From contig NC_068985.1 of assembly GCF_001194135.2 (NCBI RefSeq), positions 20,513,477 through 20,577,476 of the forward strand: 64,000 nt of DNA, read 5' to 3'. Both the position numbers and the translations under genes were made by a program. Below, in pieces: positions 20,723 through 45,430 of the stretch. The DNA comes from Octopus bimaculoides. Lineage: Eukaryota. The notes under the pieces were generated by a model. That model did not search any database. It had not been told where the DNA came from and saw only the letters and a program-made list of their open reading frames with translations. The stretch's first letter is position 1. Every line of letters starts with the position of its first letter.

Positions 20723-20767
20723 CTCCTCTCAAGATGAAGAATCCCCTCCTGTAGTGGTGGGATCAAG
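20723..20767 (+). CDS. Candidate short symmetric exon (45 nt, phase 2/2): SSQDEESPPVVVGS
   Basis: ATAATTTCAG acceptor and AAG|GTTTGT donor. Only the phase-2 frame is stop-free. Confidence 0.55.
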
Positions 20768-21519
20768 GTTTGTAAAAGATTCTCAGTCTTCAGTTTATTG
20801 TAGTTGTAGAGGTATTAGTCTTTCTGATAGTGACTTAGATACAATGCTATTGAACAATGAAACTTCGTTTTCAGCTTCTGTTACTCTGTATGATATTAAA
20901 AGTGTTCATTACTAACAATAATCATTTTTTTTTGTTTGTTTTAACATTCACTTTTCCATGCCTGCATGGATCTGATGAAACTTGTTCTGGCATATTTTTC
21001 TACAACTAGGTGCTCTTCCTGTTACCAATGTTTATCAAAGCCCATATTAGTCCTTTTTCAGATTTACAGCCCTTCTATGCTTGTAGCTTGTGATGTGGCA
21101 TAGATTACTGAGTCCACATCTCATTTATATGTCCTGGTTTTGGCATGATTTCTGCAACAGAATGCCCTTCCTTTCATCATCCGCTTTACAGAATATATTG
21201 AGTGCACCATACATCATTAACATCAACACACACAAGTACAAGAAACCTTGTCTCATGTGAGGAGGATGGAAGAGATCTATCTACCCTATGTCACTTCTTA
21301 ATCGTTTATAGATTTTATTTATTCTGTGATGCAGAAACTTAAAAGTGCACAATTCAACTTTCTAGTAGAAGTATGTGTAGTCTGATCTATGTTTATTTAT
21401 GTGAGATAAAAAGAGAATATAATCCCTGCTTATCATACACATAAATACATACACATATGCTGTATGTATCATATATATATATATATATATATATATATAT
21501 ATATATACCATTTCGAGCG

Positions 21520-21700
21520 TGGCCGTTTATGTGCGGGTGACACGTAAAAGCACCCACTACACTCTCTGAGTGGTTGGCGTTAGGAAGGGCATCCAGCTGT
21601 AGAAACTCTGCCAAATTAGATTGGAACCTGGTGTTGCCATCCGGTTTCACCAGTCCTCAGTCAAATCGTCCAACCCATGAAAGCGGACGTTAAACGACGA
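21520..21700 (+). mobile_element. SINE family C
   Basis: Highly similar to 15585-15775. Confidence 0.75.
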
Positions 21701-22447
21701 TATAATATACATATATATTGTATATATACATAATGTATATATTATATATATATGCATATATATGTATACATATGTATATATATATATATAAATGTATACA
21801 TATGTATGTATATATGTGTGTGTATATATATATATATAAAAATGTATATATATATATATATATATATATATATATATATACACACACACACACATACATA
21901 CATACATACATACATACACATATATATATAATTGCATAATAAGTTTTGTCCGATTTACAACATTTATTTAAAAGTACTAACATGACATTTAATACCATAA
22001 ATTTAATCATCTGTATAATTTCCTCAATTTTCTATTACTTCTCTCCATCTGTTCTTAAGTTAGTGAATACTTGAGATGAAAAATTCTTTGGATTTTGAAT
22101 TAAATGTTTATTTCATTCATTTTCTATATTTTCCCTGCTAGCTGTATTTCCCCTCTAAATTGCTTTGCAAAGTGGAAATCTTATAAAGCAAGATCTGAAT
22201 AATATAGAGAATATAGTTTCCCCCCCCCCCATCTGAATGATTCCATAACACTTTTAGTGATTTGTGCACTTTGTGATCAAGTATTATCTTAATGAAAGAT
22301 AACTTCCCTGTGGTTTATTAAGGCAGGATATTTTCTAACCATTACAACCTTTAGACAATAAACTTGTTGATATTAGAATTCAGAAGTGGGTTGTATGATG
22401 TGGCACCAAATGCTTACAATGAATAATTCCTTCCATATCGAATCAGA

Positions 22448-22550
22448 CACACACTTGCAAACACGCACATAAACACACACACACTTGCAAACACGCACAT
22501 AAACACACACACACTTGCAAACACGCACATAAACACACACACACACACAC
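22448..22550. repeat. 30-bp tandem repeat x3 derived from a CA microsatellite
   Basis: ACACACACACTTGCAAACACGCACATAAAC repeated. Confidence 0.85.
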
Positions 22551-22829
22551 ATACTTGTATGTGTTGTTTTAAAATTCCTAGTTAACTTGTATATAATTTA
22601 ATAACACATGACAGTATGTAAATCTGCCAGCCTCTCCAAGGTGATTCATGACCATCACATACGAAGTATCTTTATTTCAAGGTGGATGAAGATGTTATAT
22701 ATTTCTTCTCTTCATCAATTTCCATTTTAGTTTTCTGGAAACACGTGCTTTGAATTATTTTTCACAATTATTTTTCTTATGCTTGTGTCTTTCCAAGAAT
22801 TACTAACTGCTCTTCTGTTGCTGCTGTTG

Positions 22830-22900
22830 ATACTACTACTACTACTACTACTACTGCTGCTGCTGCTGCTGCTGCTGCTGCTGCTGCTGCTACTACTACT
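22830..22900. repeat. Compound (CTA)n(CTG)n(CTA)n microsatellite
   Basis: Directly visible; explains the poly-Leu ORF. Confidence 0.95.
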
Positions 22901-41890: not shown

Positions 41891-42555
41891 NNNNNNNNNN
41901 NNNNNNNNNNNNNNNNNNNNNNNNNNNNNNNNNNNNNNNNNNNNNNNNNNNNNNNNNNNNNNNNNNNNNNNNNNNNNNNNNNNNNNNNNNNNNNNNNNNN
42001 NNNNNNNNNNNNNNNNNNNNNNNNNNNNNNNNNNNNNNNNNNNNNNNNNNNNNNNNNNNNNNNNNNNNNNNNNNNNNNNNNNNNNNNNNNNNNNNNNNNN
42101 NNNNNNNNNNNNNNNNNNNNNNNNNNNNNNNNNNNNNNNNNNNNNNNNNNNNNNNNNNNNNNNNNNNNNNNNNNNNNNNNNNNNNNNNNNNNNNNNNNNN
42201 NNNNNNNNNNNNNNNNNNNNNNNNNNNNNNNNNNNNNNNNNNNNNNNNNNNNNNNNNNNNNNNNNNNNNNNNNNNNNNNNNNNNNNNNNNNNNNNNNNNN
42301 NNNNNNNNNNNNNNNNNNNNNNNNNNNNNNNNNNNNNNNNNNNNNNNNNNNNNNNNNNNNNNNNNNNNNNNNNNNNNNNNNNNNNNNNNNNNNNNNNNNN
42401 NNNNNNNNNNNNNNNNNNNNNNNNNNNNNNNNNNNNNNNNNNNNNNNNNNNNNNNNNNNNNNNNNNNNNNNNNNNNNNNNNNNNNNNNNNNNNNNNNNNN
42501 NNNNNNNNNNNNNNNNNNNNNNNNNNNNNNNNNNNNNNNNNNNNNNNNNNNNNNN
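41891..42555. other. Assembly gap (N run)
   Basis: Run of n. Confidence 1.
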
Positions 42556-43847
42556 TATATATATATATATATATTTATGCATGTATCTGTGTGCTTGTTT
42601 AAATTTTGCTACTATGAAAGTTGTGATATACAGGCAGTGTGGTTGTTATGAGTTCTTTTATAAAGAAATCATCAGCCTGCTTCATACTTTCAGAGCCATT
42701 TGGAATAAGAGATCTCTTACTTGAAAAACAGGTGAAGGTTAGTAACTAGAGTGGCTTCTGACAATAACACAATGTCAAGATTGCATATTTATCTGACCCA
42801 TGCAAGTGTGGTAAAACTAGCATAAAAACGAAATGAATGAATTAGCTTTCAATTGTTATTTGAGCTCTGATTGAGCAAACATTGATTGAGCATAAGAGAT
42901 TCCAGGCACAACCATCCTTATTTTTTTAAATATAGGACTACATTGTCCAATGAATCCTGCCTTTATTAAAATAGTTGGTATGATGGTTGAGATTTGACTG
43001 CTACCTCTAGCAGTCCAAGTGAACATGTAGAAGCTGCTTTGTTTGTACTTTTCTGTTTTGTGTATATGATTATTCATATTTTAAAGAATAATTTTGTGAA
43101 GACCACTGATTATTTCAATGTTTACACACAGCAGTGATCACCATAATCACAAATTGTGAGTACCTATGAGGAATACTTAAAATAAGTTAATTTATTACTA
43201 ACATTCATTTCTTGGGTTATGTTGTTTTTGCAATTTTTGTAGTTTTAAAGGATTTCTTGATTTTCTTGATTTCTTTTTTTTCATTTTTTTTAAAGTAAAT
43301 CCAAGATTTTGATAAATTTTGATTCATCCTCTACATTGAAATCTCAAGAAATGTGTAAAATAGAGATTAATACAAATCAAATTTTAAACCAAGAATTTTG
43401 CATTAATAGGAAAAAAATTACCATTAAATAACATTATTCATCATTACAAGGCAATTTTCAAGCTGTTAGCAAGATTAGTGTTCCCATGTTTAATGCAAAG
43501 ACCATAAAAAAACTAACTAGAAATAATATGCAGAGAGGAAAATGCTGATATTAGCCAAGTGTAATATAATTTTAACTAAAATAAAAGGGATGATAGTGGG
43601 CATGTTTAAGGTTTTCTCTAACTTCAAAATTAATGGTTCTAACCAAGTCTAATTCCTTACACCAATAAATTTACTATACTATGATGCATATAGTTACATT
43701 TGCAGGTGAATATAGTTACTTAGTGAATCAATATTCACTACTTCAGTGATTATTGGATCACTAAACTTGTTGATATATGGAATTAGAACAAGAAATAATA
43801 ATAATAAGGGGCATTGTCTTCAGAATTTTAGTCTTATTACCTTAAAC

Positions 43848-44155
43848 CAATGGTTCCCAAAGTAAGCAGTTTTGCCCCCCTGGGGCGGTGGAAATTTCCA
43901 AGGTGGTGTTGAAGAAAAGTGGCGTGATAATGGAGTAGTGAATCATGCAAAGATTGAGGTGATAATGGGGTGGCGATTCATGTAAAAACAACAAAATATG
44001 AGTTCATTAGGCTAAGTTTTATTTGTGAAATACAGTTGCTTTGAATTTGCTTCACAAAGAGGTCTGTGTTTGTGAAGGTTAGATGGGGTGGGGACGCTAG
44101 GAATGTGGCCTGGGTGTTAAGGGGGCAACAGCCTGAAAAAGTTTGGGAACCACGG
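43848..44155. mobile_element. hAT (Charlie-like) MITE, 308 bp
   Basis: Perfect 8-bp TSD CCTTAAAC (43840-43847 and 44156-44163) and TIRs CAATGGTTCCCAAA / TTTGGGAACCACGG. Confidence 0.85.
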
Positions 44156-44998
44156 CCTTAAACTATGCTTTCTTAAAACTGAAATATTCAACTATAGCAT
44201 TGCACATTTTAGCAAGTTATAAAAGAATTAAAAGCTCTTAAGTTTTTTTTCTTTATAAAATCTGAAACCTTACAAAAGACAAATCAGTTCAGTTGCTTTT
44301 TTGGCTTTTGCTATTTGACATTTTAAAGTAATCAAGTTCTTGAAATAACAGTTTCTACATGTTGTTCTGAAGTCTGCTCTAATTTGTTGATAAACATTGT
44401 GTTTTAGAAATGGCTTGACGAGCTTTATTATACTCATAATTATTTCCTTCTTAGAAATATTTATAAAAAGAAGGGACAACTAAAACAATCCTGACATCTT
44501 GTAGAATTTTATTTTATCAGCTTTAGAAGAATATTGCAATATTGAGGCAGTGAACTAAATATCATCAGCTTGTCTCATCATCCAAACTAAAAATGAAGGC
44601 AATTAACCAAAACCATAATTGTATCTCATGCTGAATTAGGAAGTTGCCATAAAGTATTTCACAATACAGACATACTGTAATGCTATGAGAGAAATAAGCT
44701 GACCTTAAATGAGCGAGTGACAAATATTTCATATTTCAATGATTGAAGCAATTTTGTTTTGAATTACTGAGTAATTTATCTTTCCTTTATTATTACAATC
44801 CTGCTTCTGTCATATTTTATACTTGCCAAATAATTTATTGGGTATCTCCATAAATATGAATTTACTCCAAACAATAATTTCTGAGCTTAGCTTTATTTCC
44901 AAAACCAATTAACTCCATTAGAACAATGCAGGGTCATTTTTGTAATGGGATGAACTGGTTTTGATTCTCTTGAAATCTGTGTAACAGTTACATATCAT

Positions 44999-45195
44999 TG
45001 GTTTCAAATTCTGGCACAAAGCCTGCAATTTTAGCAGGAGGGTTGAAGCTGATTACAGTGATCAACTGGTACTTATTTTATTGACCCTAAAAGGATGAAA
45101 GGCAAAGTAGACTCTGGCAGAATTTGAACTCAGAACGTAAAGATGGATGAAATGCTGCTAAAAATTTTGCCCAGTATGCAAACAATTCTGCTTTA
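44999..45195 (-). mobile_element. Family B SINE
   Basis: GGTTTCAAATTCTGGCACAAAGCC...GACCCTAAAAGGATGAAAGGCAAAGT...GAATTTGAACTCAGAACG. Confidence 0.75.
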
Positions 45196-45367
45196 ACTTT
45201 CTGCAAACTTTCTCACAAAGTTTCATTGACAGTACAGGTTCATAGTTAATTCTCATTCTACTACCTATCTGTAATATTGTAAATACTTCAGATTATAATC
45301 TCCTCCGTTAAACATGGACCAAATACTTTTTAAATAGTAGCTATAGTTTCAGTTGATATGTTCACAG

Positions 45368-45430
45368 GTCAAATTCAGCAAAGCGGCTGGATTTTATATC
45401 TCAAGAAATGCAATTACAAAGAAGACTGAG
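45368..45430 (+). CDS. Candidate short symmetric exon (63 nt, phase 2/2): SNSAKRLDFISQEMQLQRRL
   Basis: ATGTTCACAG acceptor and GAG|GTTAGT donor. Open in phase 2 and also in phase 0. Confidence 0.65.

Follow-up and report, generated by a model that had tools for sequence, protein, structure and literature searches.

The stretch of DNA analysed here (64,000 nucleotides; hereafter the window) covers positions 20,513,477 to 20,577,476 of the forward strand of contig NC_068985.1 from Octopus bimaculoides. It contains exons of an F-BAR gene and, within a long intron of this gene, an array of short alternative exons. The gene is LOC106875793, whose isoform proteins were identical to the window in a protein search with a long query; the same query also retrieved LOC115211754 from O. 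sinensis. Its product is a Stac-like adaptor of the invertebrate type, in which an F-BAR domain with its extension at the N-terminus is followed by a disordered linker and, at the C-terminus, by a tandem SH3 domain of the STAC type. Stac proteins regulate L-type calcium channels in muscle and neurons. An initial annotation of the window had placed a cephalopod F-BAR gene here, with an FX-like exon ending in phase 2, and both the gene and the exon, which terminates in VNMCQ + AG, were confirmed.

Homologs of the protein were identified by an exhaustive HMMER search in molluscs, one nemertean, one brachiopod, and arthropods. The AlphaFold model of a full-length decapodiform ortholog contains long F-BAR helices at residues 13-68, 76-158, and 162-245. 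All 50 of its 50 best matches in the PDB, as identified with Foldseek, were F-BAR domains (probability 1.00, template modeling score at most 0.75), and the longest alignments were to the F-BARx domain of srGAP2 and the F-BAR+FX domain of FES. The sequence identity to the solved F-BAR structures is very low, 10-17%, and the Pfam FCH family (PF00611) matches with 20-24 bits, below the gathering cut-off of 27.8, which is weak but consistent with an F-BAR domain; some orthologs carry a precomputed PF00611 listing. At the C-terminus, the best PDB matches were the tandem SH3 domains of STAC3, STAC1, and STAC2 over about 100-113 residues (E = 2e-21 to 5e-16), and two beta-rich modules are predicted at residues 576-689 of the octopus model. 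The Pfam domain C1_1 was not found in the octopus protein (P0101), nor in the proteins from oyster, nemertean, and brachiopod. The arthropod homologs combine FCH, C1, and SH3 domains, one of them (P0038) with a C1_1 match at E = 2e-10. A PDB sequence search and a Pfam search with a Sepia protein fragment gave noise only.

Three constitutive exons precede the array (Table 1). The donor at position 10290 feeds either the array or, in the canonical mRNA, an exon starting with (R)NLANHLY, and the homologous proteins from all groups found read CQR-NLANHLY across this junction. Neither the NLANHLY exon nor a His-rich segment known from decapodiform transcripts was detected in the window by a sensitive tblastn search, which returned microsatellite matches only. 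The NLANHLY acceptor exon is probably located beyond position 64000, and less likely in an assembly gap. Since the canonical mRNA joins the donor at 10290 to this exon, positions 10291-64000 belong to a single canonical intron of more than 53.7 kb.

Seven short exons had been proposed in this intron, and six of them, here called E1-E4, E6, and E7, are exact exons of XP_052824144.1 (isoform X1). As shown by tblastn, joining E1-E2-E3-E4-E6-E7 of the window yields X1 at 100% identity, in the order VNMCQ-S-SSQDEESPPVVVGS-S-PSPEVKDIQPPDSPS-S-VSSRTTIESPQ-R-TYSSKQSLERRTSISSSFKIF-R-SFSREVSTDAESETSSHRKV-R-SNSAKRLDFISQEMQLQRRL-R-NLANHLY. The candidates were taken from a list of all AG...GT intervals of the proposed lengths that are open in phase 2. 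The fifth exon had been proposed without coordinates, as a second exon of 36 nucleotides, and the interval at 38269-38304 fits it best, as it does not end in AG and is open in another frame. This interval is unsupported: it is present in none of the nine O. bimaculoides isoforms, nor in the O. sinensis protein, nor in the decapodiform transcripts, and its composite score (see below) does not rise above that of the control strand.

All seven intervals have AG/GT borders, a length divisible by three, and an open phase 2 (offset 1), as claimed. Phase 2 is the sole open frame in three of them (E1, E2, and E6), five (E1, E2, E4, E6, and E7) end in AG, and within the window the sequence TATTCTTACAG is confined to the acceptors of E2 and E6 (0.07 matches expected). 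The six annotated exons are symmetric cassettes in phase 2-2 throughout. Their acceptors score between -2.9 and 4.9, whereas those of the three constitutive exons reach 6.3 to 11.5. In four of the six donors, position +3 is a T; the lower acceptor scores and the +3T donors fit regulated exons. None of the motifs TGCATG, GCATG, TCTCT, TGCTGC, and ACTAAC was significantly enriched in the 300 nucleotides flanking the exons.

The criteria behind the initial annotation are by themselves at chance level and carry no statistical weight. Between 20.7 and 45.4 kb, 270 AG...GT intervals of 36-66 nucleotides that are divisible by three and open in phase 2 were counted on the plus strand, versus 277 on the control strand. 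The six exons are validated by annotation and conservation, not by these criteria. Each candidate was given a composite score that combined crude weights for the splice sites with a model of amino-acid composition, for which the disordered linkers of homologs outside the octopods served as the training set. This score ranked the six exons among the first 26 of 1106 candidates on the gene strand, with few candidates on the control strand scoring as high (Table 1). Another candidate with a high composition score, at 51921-51992, was rejected for a poor donor and lack of support. The real exons had been picked by eye, yet by criteria that are weightless alone, and the public annotation already held the answer.

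Alternative use and conservation of the short exons

The initial annotation had regarded these exons as easily missed, which did not hold: RefSeq has all six across nine O. bimaculoides isoforms. E3 and E6 are included in nine of nine, while E1, E2, E4, and E7 vary. All four are present in X1 and in X4, which differs from X1 further downstream. Isoform X2 lacks E1, X3 lacks E2, X5 lacks E7, and X6 lacks E4; X7 lacks both E1 and E2, X8 lacks E2 and E4, and X9 retains only E7. The isoforms X1-X9 thereby contain eight distinct linkers of 55-108 residues in proteins of 705-847 residues. The O. sinensis protein XP_036359004.1 contains all six exons, while the exons are skipped in the models from O. 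vulgaris and Argonauta. The model from Sepia pharaonis (CAE1329460.1) is truncated; it covers E1-E4 before continuing into intron sequence. An alternative 3'-end, as suggested by this model, was rejected for the octopus, where nine of nine isoforms reach NLANHLY. The exons and their alternative use are already part of the NCBI annotation and represent ordinary cassette splicing in a disordered loop.

Transcripts from decapodiforms both include and skip the array. An RNA sequencing contig of 2521 nucleotides from a cuttlefish-like species (run SRR27666069) encodes 731 amino acids (open reading frame 72-2267). After MCQR, it contains homologs of E1, E2, E4, E6, and E7, followed by about 115 His-rich residues and RNLANHLY. 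All of its junction codons are split as AG/N, and lengths of 33, 42, 66, 66, and 63 nucleotides were inferred for these exons. E3 is not present in the decapodiform inclusion mRNA (P0068). In contrast to inclusion, a transcript in SRR8281678 skips all cassettes and joins MCQ-AGG-AAT directly (MCQR-NLANHLY), as do two decapodiform open reading frames of 758 amino acids (P0061 and P0063). Because the decapodiform contigs represent both skip-all and cassette-carrying mRNAs, the array is transcribed, alternative, and conserved across coleoids. Together with the eight RefSeq linkers, these mRNAs bear out the proposal of combinatorial symmetric cassettes.

The mRNA in SRR27666069 stops at SSPSSSEVPASKQKEKPAKKKEEEK ahead of the SH3 domains, and the octopus models contain nothing that corresponds to its His-rich residues. 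Both points suggest that an isoform class without SH3 domains, and further lineage-specific cassettes, occur in decapodiforms.

Conservation between the octopus and the decapodiforms, which the initial annotation had named as a check, varies among the six exons. The identity is 10/16 residues in E2 (to Sepia), 14/22 in E4 (45/66 at the nucleotide level), 13/22 in E6, and 11/21 in E7. It is weak in E1 (3/15 residues), which has the homolog SSDSDKSFDK in the decapodiform mRNA and the Sepia model, and in E3 (4/14 residues). The cores of the R-x-x-S sites are retained, with RTYS corresponding to RKFS or RKMS, RSFS present in both, and RSNS corresponding to RSDS. The motifs SSSFK[IL]F and LQRR[LI] in E4, E6, and E7 are also conserved.

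Outside the cephalopods, the insert at CQR-NLANHLY is absent from the listed proteins of chitons, gastropods, bivalves, nemerteans, brachiopods, and arthropods, including RefSeq species with multiple isoforms. The array therefore looks coleoid-specific among these proteins, although unlisted isoforms from non-cephalopods could exist. At this junction, open reading frames on anonymous marine contigs have either CQR and then GT, or tgcag and then (G)AAT, which suggests that the phase-2 intron is older than the cassette array.

A second alternative region is located in the C-terminal linker downstream of the window, where EAPTSKQKEKFPRKKDE is present or absent in the octopus (P0106 versus P0102). 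The C-terminal linker of bivalves also contains a cassette, 'SHSPK.RRKKLN.RMKSFSLD...', that is present or absent among the oyster isoforms and has a similar R-x-K-S-F-S motif.

Structure and interpretation of the variable loop

In the structure predicted for octopus isoform X2, MCQ marks the exact end of the FX helix (residues 142-178). The segment at residues 179-246, encoded by E2, E3, E4, and E6, contains no secondary structure and has a predicted local distance difference test (pLDDT) score of about 32-41. The following helix (residues 247-312, pLDDT 63-76) extends from the end of E6 across E7 (residues 251-270) and the NLANHLY exon. The linker and helices are arranged in the same way in the AlphaFold model of the decapodiform ortholog. 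The models thus predict disorder for E1-E6 and, for E7, an N-terminal elongation of the helix that follows. The Ser-rich disordered linker of the initial annotation is thus recognizable in the low-pLDDT segment and in the composition of the X1 insert, which is 27% Ser and 16% Arg+Lys; E1-E6 are rich in Ser, Arg, and Pro. The X1 insert contains five R-x-x-S sites, located in E4, E6, and E7, and five SP/TP sites, located in E1-E3.

The codons split by the junctions had been thought to encode Arg before a purine and Ser before a pyrimidine, so that exon choice would create or remove the R-x-x-S sites RTYS, RSFS, and RSNS. The first part stands (MCQ-R versus MCQ-S), while the second does not, as exon choice does not edit these sites. 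The upstream donors all end in AG, except that of E3, which ends in CG; E4, E6, E7, and the NLANHLY exon begin with a purine and E1-E3 with a pyrimidine. Hence, the junction residue is Arg before E4, E6, E7, and NLANHLY and Ser before E1-E3, whatever the upstream exon, and exon choice therefore adds or removes whole motif modules. Only the residue that follows MCQ depends on the context: it is Arg if all exons are skipped and Ser otherwise. The terminal AG with its split codon is a by-product of the donor consensus.

The best overall explanation, and in our judgment a highly probable one, is that the window contains an alternative cassette array in the long intron of a Stac-like gene, with a variable loop that carries sequence motifs. 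With six exons in phase 2-2 and of lengths divisible by three in one long intron, any subset maintains the reading frame. Varied combinations are spliced between the exon ending with VNMCQ + AG and the exon starting with (R)NLANHLY, and insert up to 108 residues exactly between the end of the FX-like helix and the start of the next long helix. Exon choice would set the length and the motif content of the loop, with E1-E3 bringing SP/TP sites and E4, E6, and E7 bringing basophilic R-x-x-S sites that are conserved from octopus to the cuttlefish-like species. The choice of loop would tune the packing of the F-BAR extension or the binding of partners, and would give phosphorylation-dependent control.

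Several observations weigh against this explanation. The helix of E7 is predicted with moderate pLDDT values only (63-71). For O. sinensis, there is only one model, which includes all six exons, and the XP_ isoforms of O. bimaculoides are pipeline models in which some of the full-length combinations, being deduced from short reads, may not be real. Moreover, the mollusc proteins lack the C1 domain, one of the defining features of STAC, and a function can therefore not be carried over directly from STAC or Dstac.

The loop could also be mainly a passive spacer, or entropic loop, that alters the geometry of the F-BAR extension or the packing of the dimer, or that marks a separate isoform class without SH3 domains, with no specific role for phosphorylation. 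The poor sequence conservation of E1 and E3 is consistent with a spacer, as are the about 115 unrelated His-rich residues that decapodiforms insert at the same place and the end of their inclusion transcript ahead of the SH3 domains. However, the conservation of the R-x-x-S cores and of SSSFK[IL]F and LQRR[LI] in E4, E6, and E7 points to a sequence-specific function, and a mainly passive loop is possible but unlikely. Alternatively, the linker may be constitutive in the octopus, with real exons that are always included and with the diversity of X2-X9 resulting from modeling of noisy or partial junction reads. The single complete O. sinensis model, the presence of E3 and E6 in all nine isoforms, and the status of the XP_ records as predictions would all agree with this. 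Yet, the decapodiform contigs show both full skipping and inclusion, E3 is present in one model and missing from one transcript, regulated exons typically have weak acceptors and +3T donors, and a strict 3n, phase 2-2 design is needless for constitutive exons, which argues that a constitutive linker is improbable. That all candidates are chance AG...GT open-frame fragments of an AT-rich intron has a negligible probability, since the resemblance to the control strand is outweighed, for six exons, by exact matches to annotated mRNAs and by protein-level conservation in cuttlefish-like transcripts, which refute it for all but the chance-like interval at 38269-38304.

A wider hypothesis, which builds on the alternative cassette array, is that the array arose as an innovation of the coleoids. 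Where the F-BAR extension has its tip, an ancient phase-2 intron would have grown to more than 50 kb and gained a set of conserved modular exons, and tissue-specific combinations, for example in neurons versus muscle, would set the phospho-dependent control of Stac at membranes or CaV channels. We consider this hypothesis speculative and somewhat doubtful; if true, it would add a splicing-based route to the diversity of excitable cells in cephalopods alongside RNA editing. A conserved, alternatively spliced, and motif-bearing loop at the end of the F-BAR extension provides a handle on BAR-domain regulation in cephalopods, and two points retain a modest interest: that the array apparently originated within the coleoids, and what it does in an invertebrate Stac protein.

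Assembly gaps and repeats in the window

The window is AT-rich (32% GC) and contains four assembly gaps, all intronic (Table 1). The order on one strand of the FX exon, E1, E2, E3, E4, E6, and E7 agrees with three sources, namely the RefSeq mRNAs, the decapodiform mRNA, and the O. sinensis protein, which derives from a separate assembly. The sequences on either side of each gap therefore belong together, and the reading frame is carried by the splice junctions rather than across gap sequence. One more small exon may be hidden inside a gap; the O. sinensis protein contains no additional residues at the positions that match the gaps.

A family of repeats resembling short interspersed nuclear elements (SINE-like), about 150-250 bp in length, in both orientations and 74-96% identical, takes up a large part of the intron sequence from the FX exon to E2. 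The recurring 'LDALPNANHS' pseudo-reading frames are translations of this family. One copy of a second repeat family is located about 175 nucleotides upstream of E7. A degenerate remnant of a mariner/Mos1-like transposase and two open reading frame fragments were also identified. The fragments, which have no Pfam match, contain 'RLHWFGHVMRM...PRKTW' and 'DIVVVNKKERTC' and presumably resemble the C-terminal parts of proteins from retrotransposons of the long interspersed nuclear element (LINE) type. Long microsatellites or low-complexity tracts consist of trinucleotide runs (poly-N/S/Y/E/K/D in translation), (GA)n, and a repeat coding for His, Pro, and Thr; these tracts cause the spurious tblastn matches to the His-rich decapodiform segment.

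Table 1. Exons, exon candidates, gaps, and repeats in the window. The exons E1-E4, E6, and E7 are in phase 2-2 and match X1 at 100%; the last column gives the rank of the composite score and, in parentheses, how many candidates on the control strand reached the same score or a higher one.
Feature	Position	Strand	Description	Rank (control)
Constitutive exon, F-BAR region	6826-6906	+	Encodes ELEEIHIDTCNTIKAAIESHALVLLNK; tblastn of X1, O. sinensis, and Sepia-like proteins; borders read from sequence	
Constitutive exon, F-BAR end and loop after it	8454-8627	+	ATERHRRFDD...INAELMEL; tblastn; borders cag/GCA and CTC/gtaaga	
FX-like helix exon	10139-10290	+	ESVRDQL...VNMCQ + AG, ends in phase 2; tblastn, predicted helix	
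E1	20723-20767	+	45 nt; (S)SSQDEESPPVVVGS	15 (1)
E2	28469-28516	+	48 nt; (S)PSPEVKDIQPPDSPS	1 (0)
E3	33416-33451	+	36 nt, ends in CG; (S)VSSRTTIESPQ	13 (1)
E4	35530-35595	+	66 nt; (R)TYSSKQSLERRTSISSSFKIF, two R-x-x-S sites	26 (3)
Probable second 36-nt exon of the initial annotation	38269-38304	+	Not supported as exon	33 (11)
E6	39530-39592	+	63 nt; (R)SFSREVSTDAESETSSHRKV	2 (0)
E7	45368-45430	+	63 nt; (R)SNSAKRLDFISQEMQLQRRL	9 (0)
Assembly gap (N run)	16522-16640		Intronic	
Assembly gap (N run)	20014-20615		Intronic	
Assembly gap	36323-36667		Within the E4-E6 intron	
Assembly gap	41891-42555		Within the E6-E7 intron	
SINE-like family	5380-5480, 7690-7900, 13470-13675, 15585-15785, 17648-17901, 18399-18621, 21532-21679, 23438-23698			
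Second short interspersed repeat family	1097-1168, 5096-5209, 10750-10897, 24312-24442, 45056-45192, 50480-50627		76-86% identity	
Mariner/Mos1-like transposase remnant	2117-2890	-	Weak HTH_48 match (E = 0.0033, below cut-off); 'SLEDDERSGRP' motif	
Open reading frame fragment	7299-7547	+	Presumably LINE-type	
Open reading frame fragment	53689-53943	+	Presumably LINE-type	
Microsatellites or low-complexity tracts	54180-54970, 30340-30450, 52650-53030			

Comparison with known systems

The predicted fold of the decapodiform ortholog matches the F-BAR structures of srGAP2 (F-BARx) and FES/FER (F-BAR+FX), and NCBI names the oyster orthologs of the octopus gene NOSTRIN. The octopus protein differs from srGAP2, FES, and NOSTRIN in that its C-terminus is STAC-like, rather than a RhoGAP domain, a kinase, or a single NOSTRIN-type SH3 domain.

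Similar to the exons of neural micro-exon programs, to which the initial annotation had likened them, the octopus exons are short and symmetric, have weak splice sites, and encode disordered segments with motifs gained or lost by exon choice. The likeness fails in size: at 36-66 nucleotides, they exceed the classical micro-exons of the SRRM4/nSR100 type (3-27 nucleotides). With the schistosome micro-exon genes, the array shares the runs of short symmetric exons and the combinatorial in-frame skipping. However, those genes encode secreted proteins and are almost wholly built from micro-exons, whereas the octopus array, which is flanked by ordinary exons, contributes a loop to a large cytosolic adaptor and forms a minor part of a protein that otherwise consists of F-BAR, linker, and SH3.

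Parallels are also found among the invertebrate Stac proteins. The array is absent from the listed proteins of arthropods, brachiopods, nemerteans, and non-cephalopod molluscs, and the octopus and other mollusc proteins differ from Dstac in that no C1 domain was detected. The F-BAR-like domain and extension of the octopus protein align with the arthropod homologs, and its tandem SH3 domain best matches the structures of STAC1, STAC2, and STAC3. Dstac and other invertebrate Stac proteins contain a putative BAR domain of unknown role, which within the family is restricted to invertebrates, and have many splice forms (PMC7573238), and the octopus gene is, like Dstac, heavily alternatively spliced.

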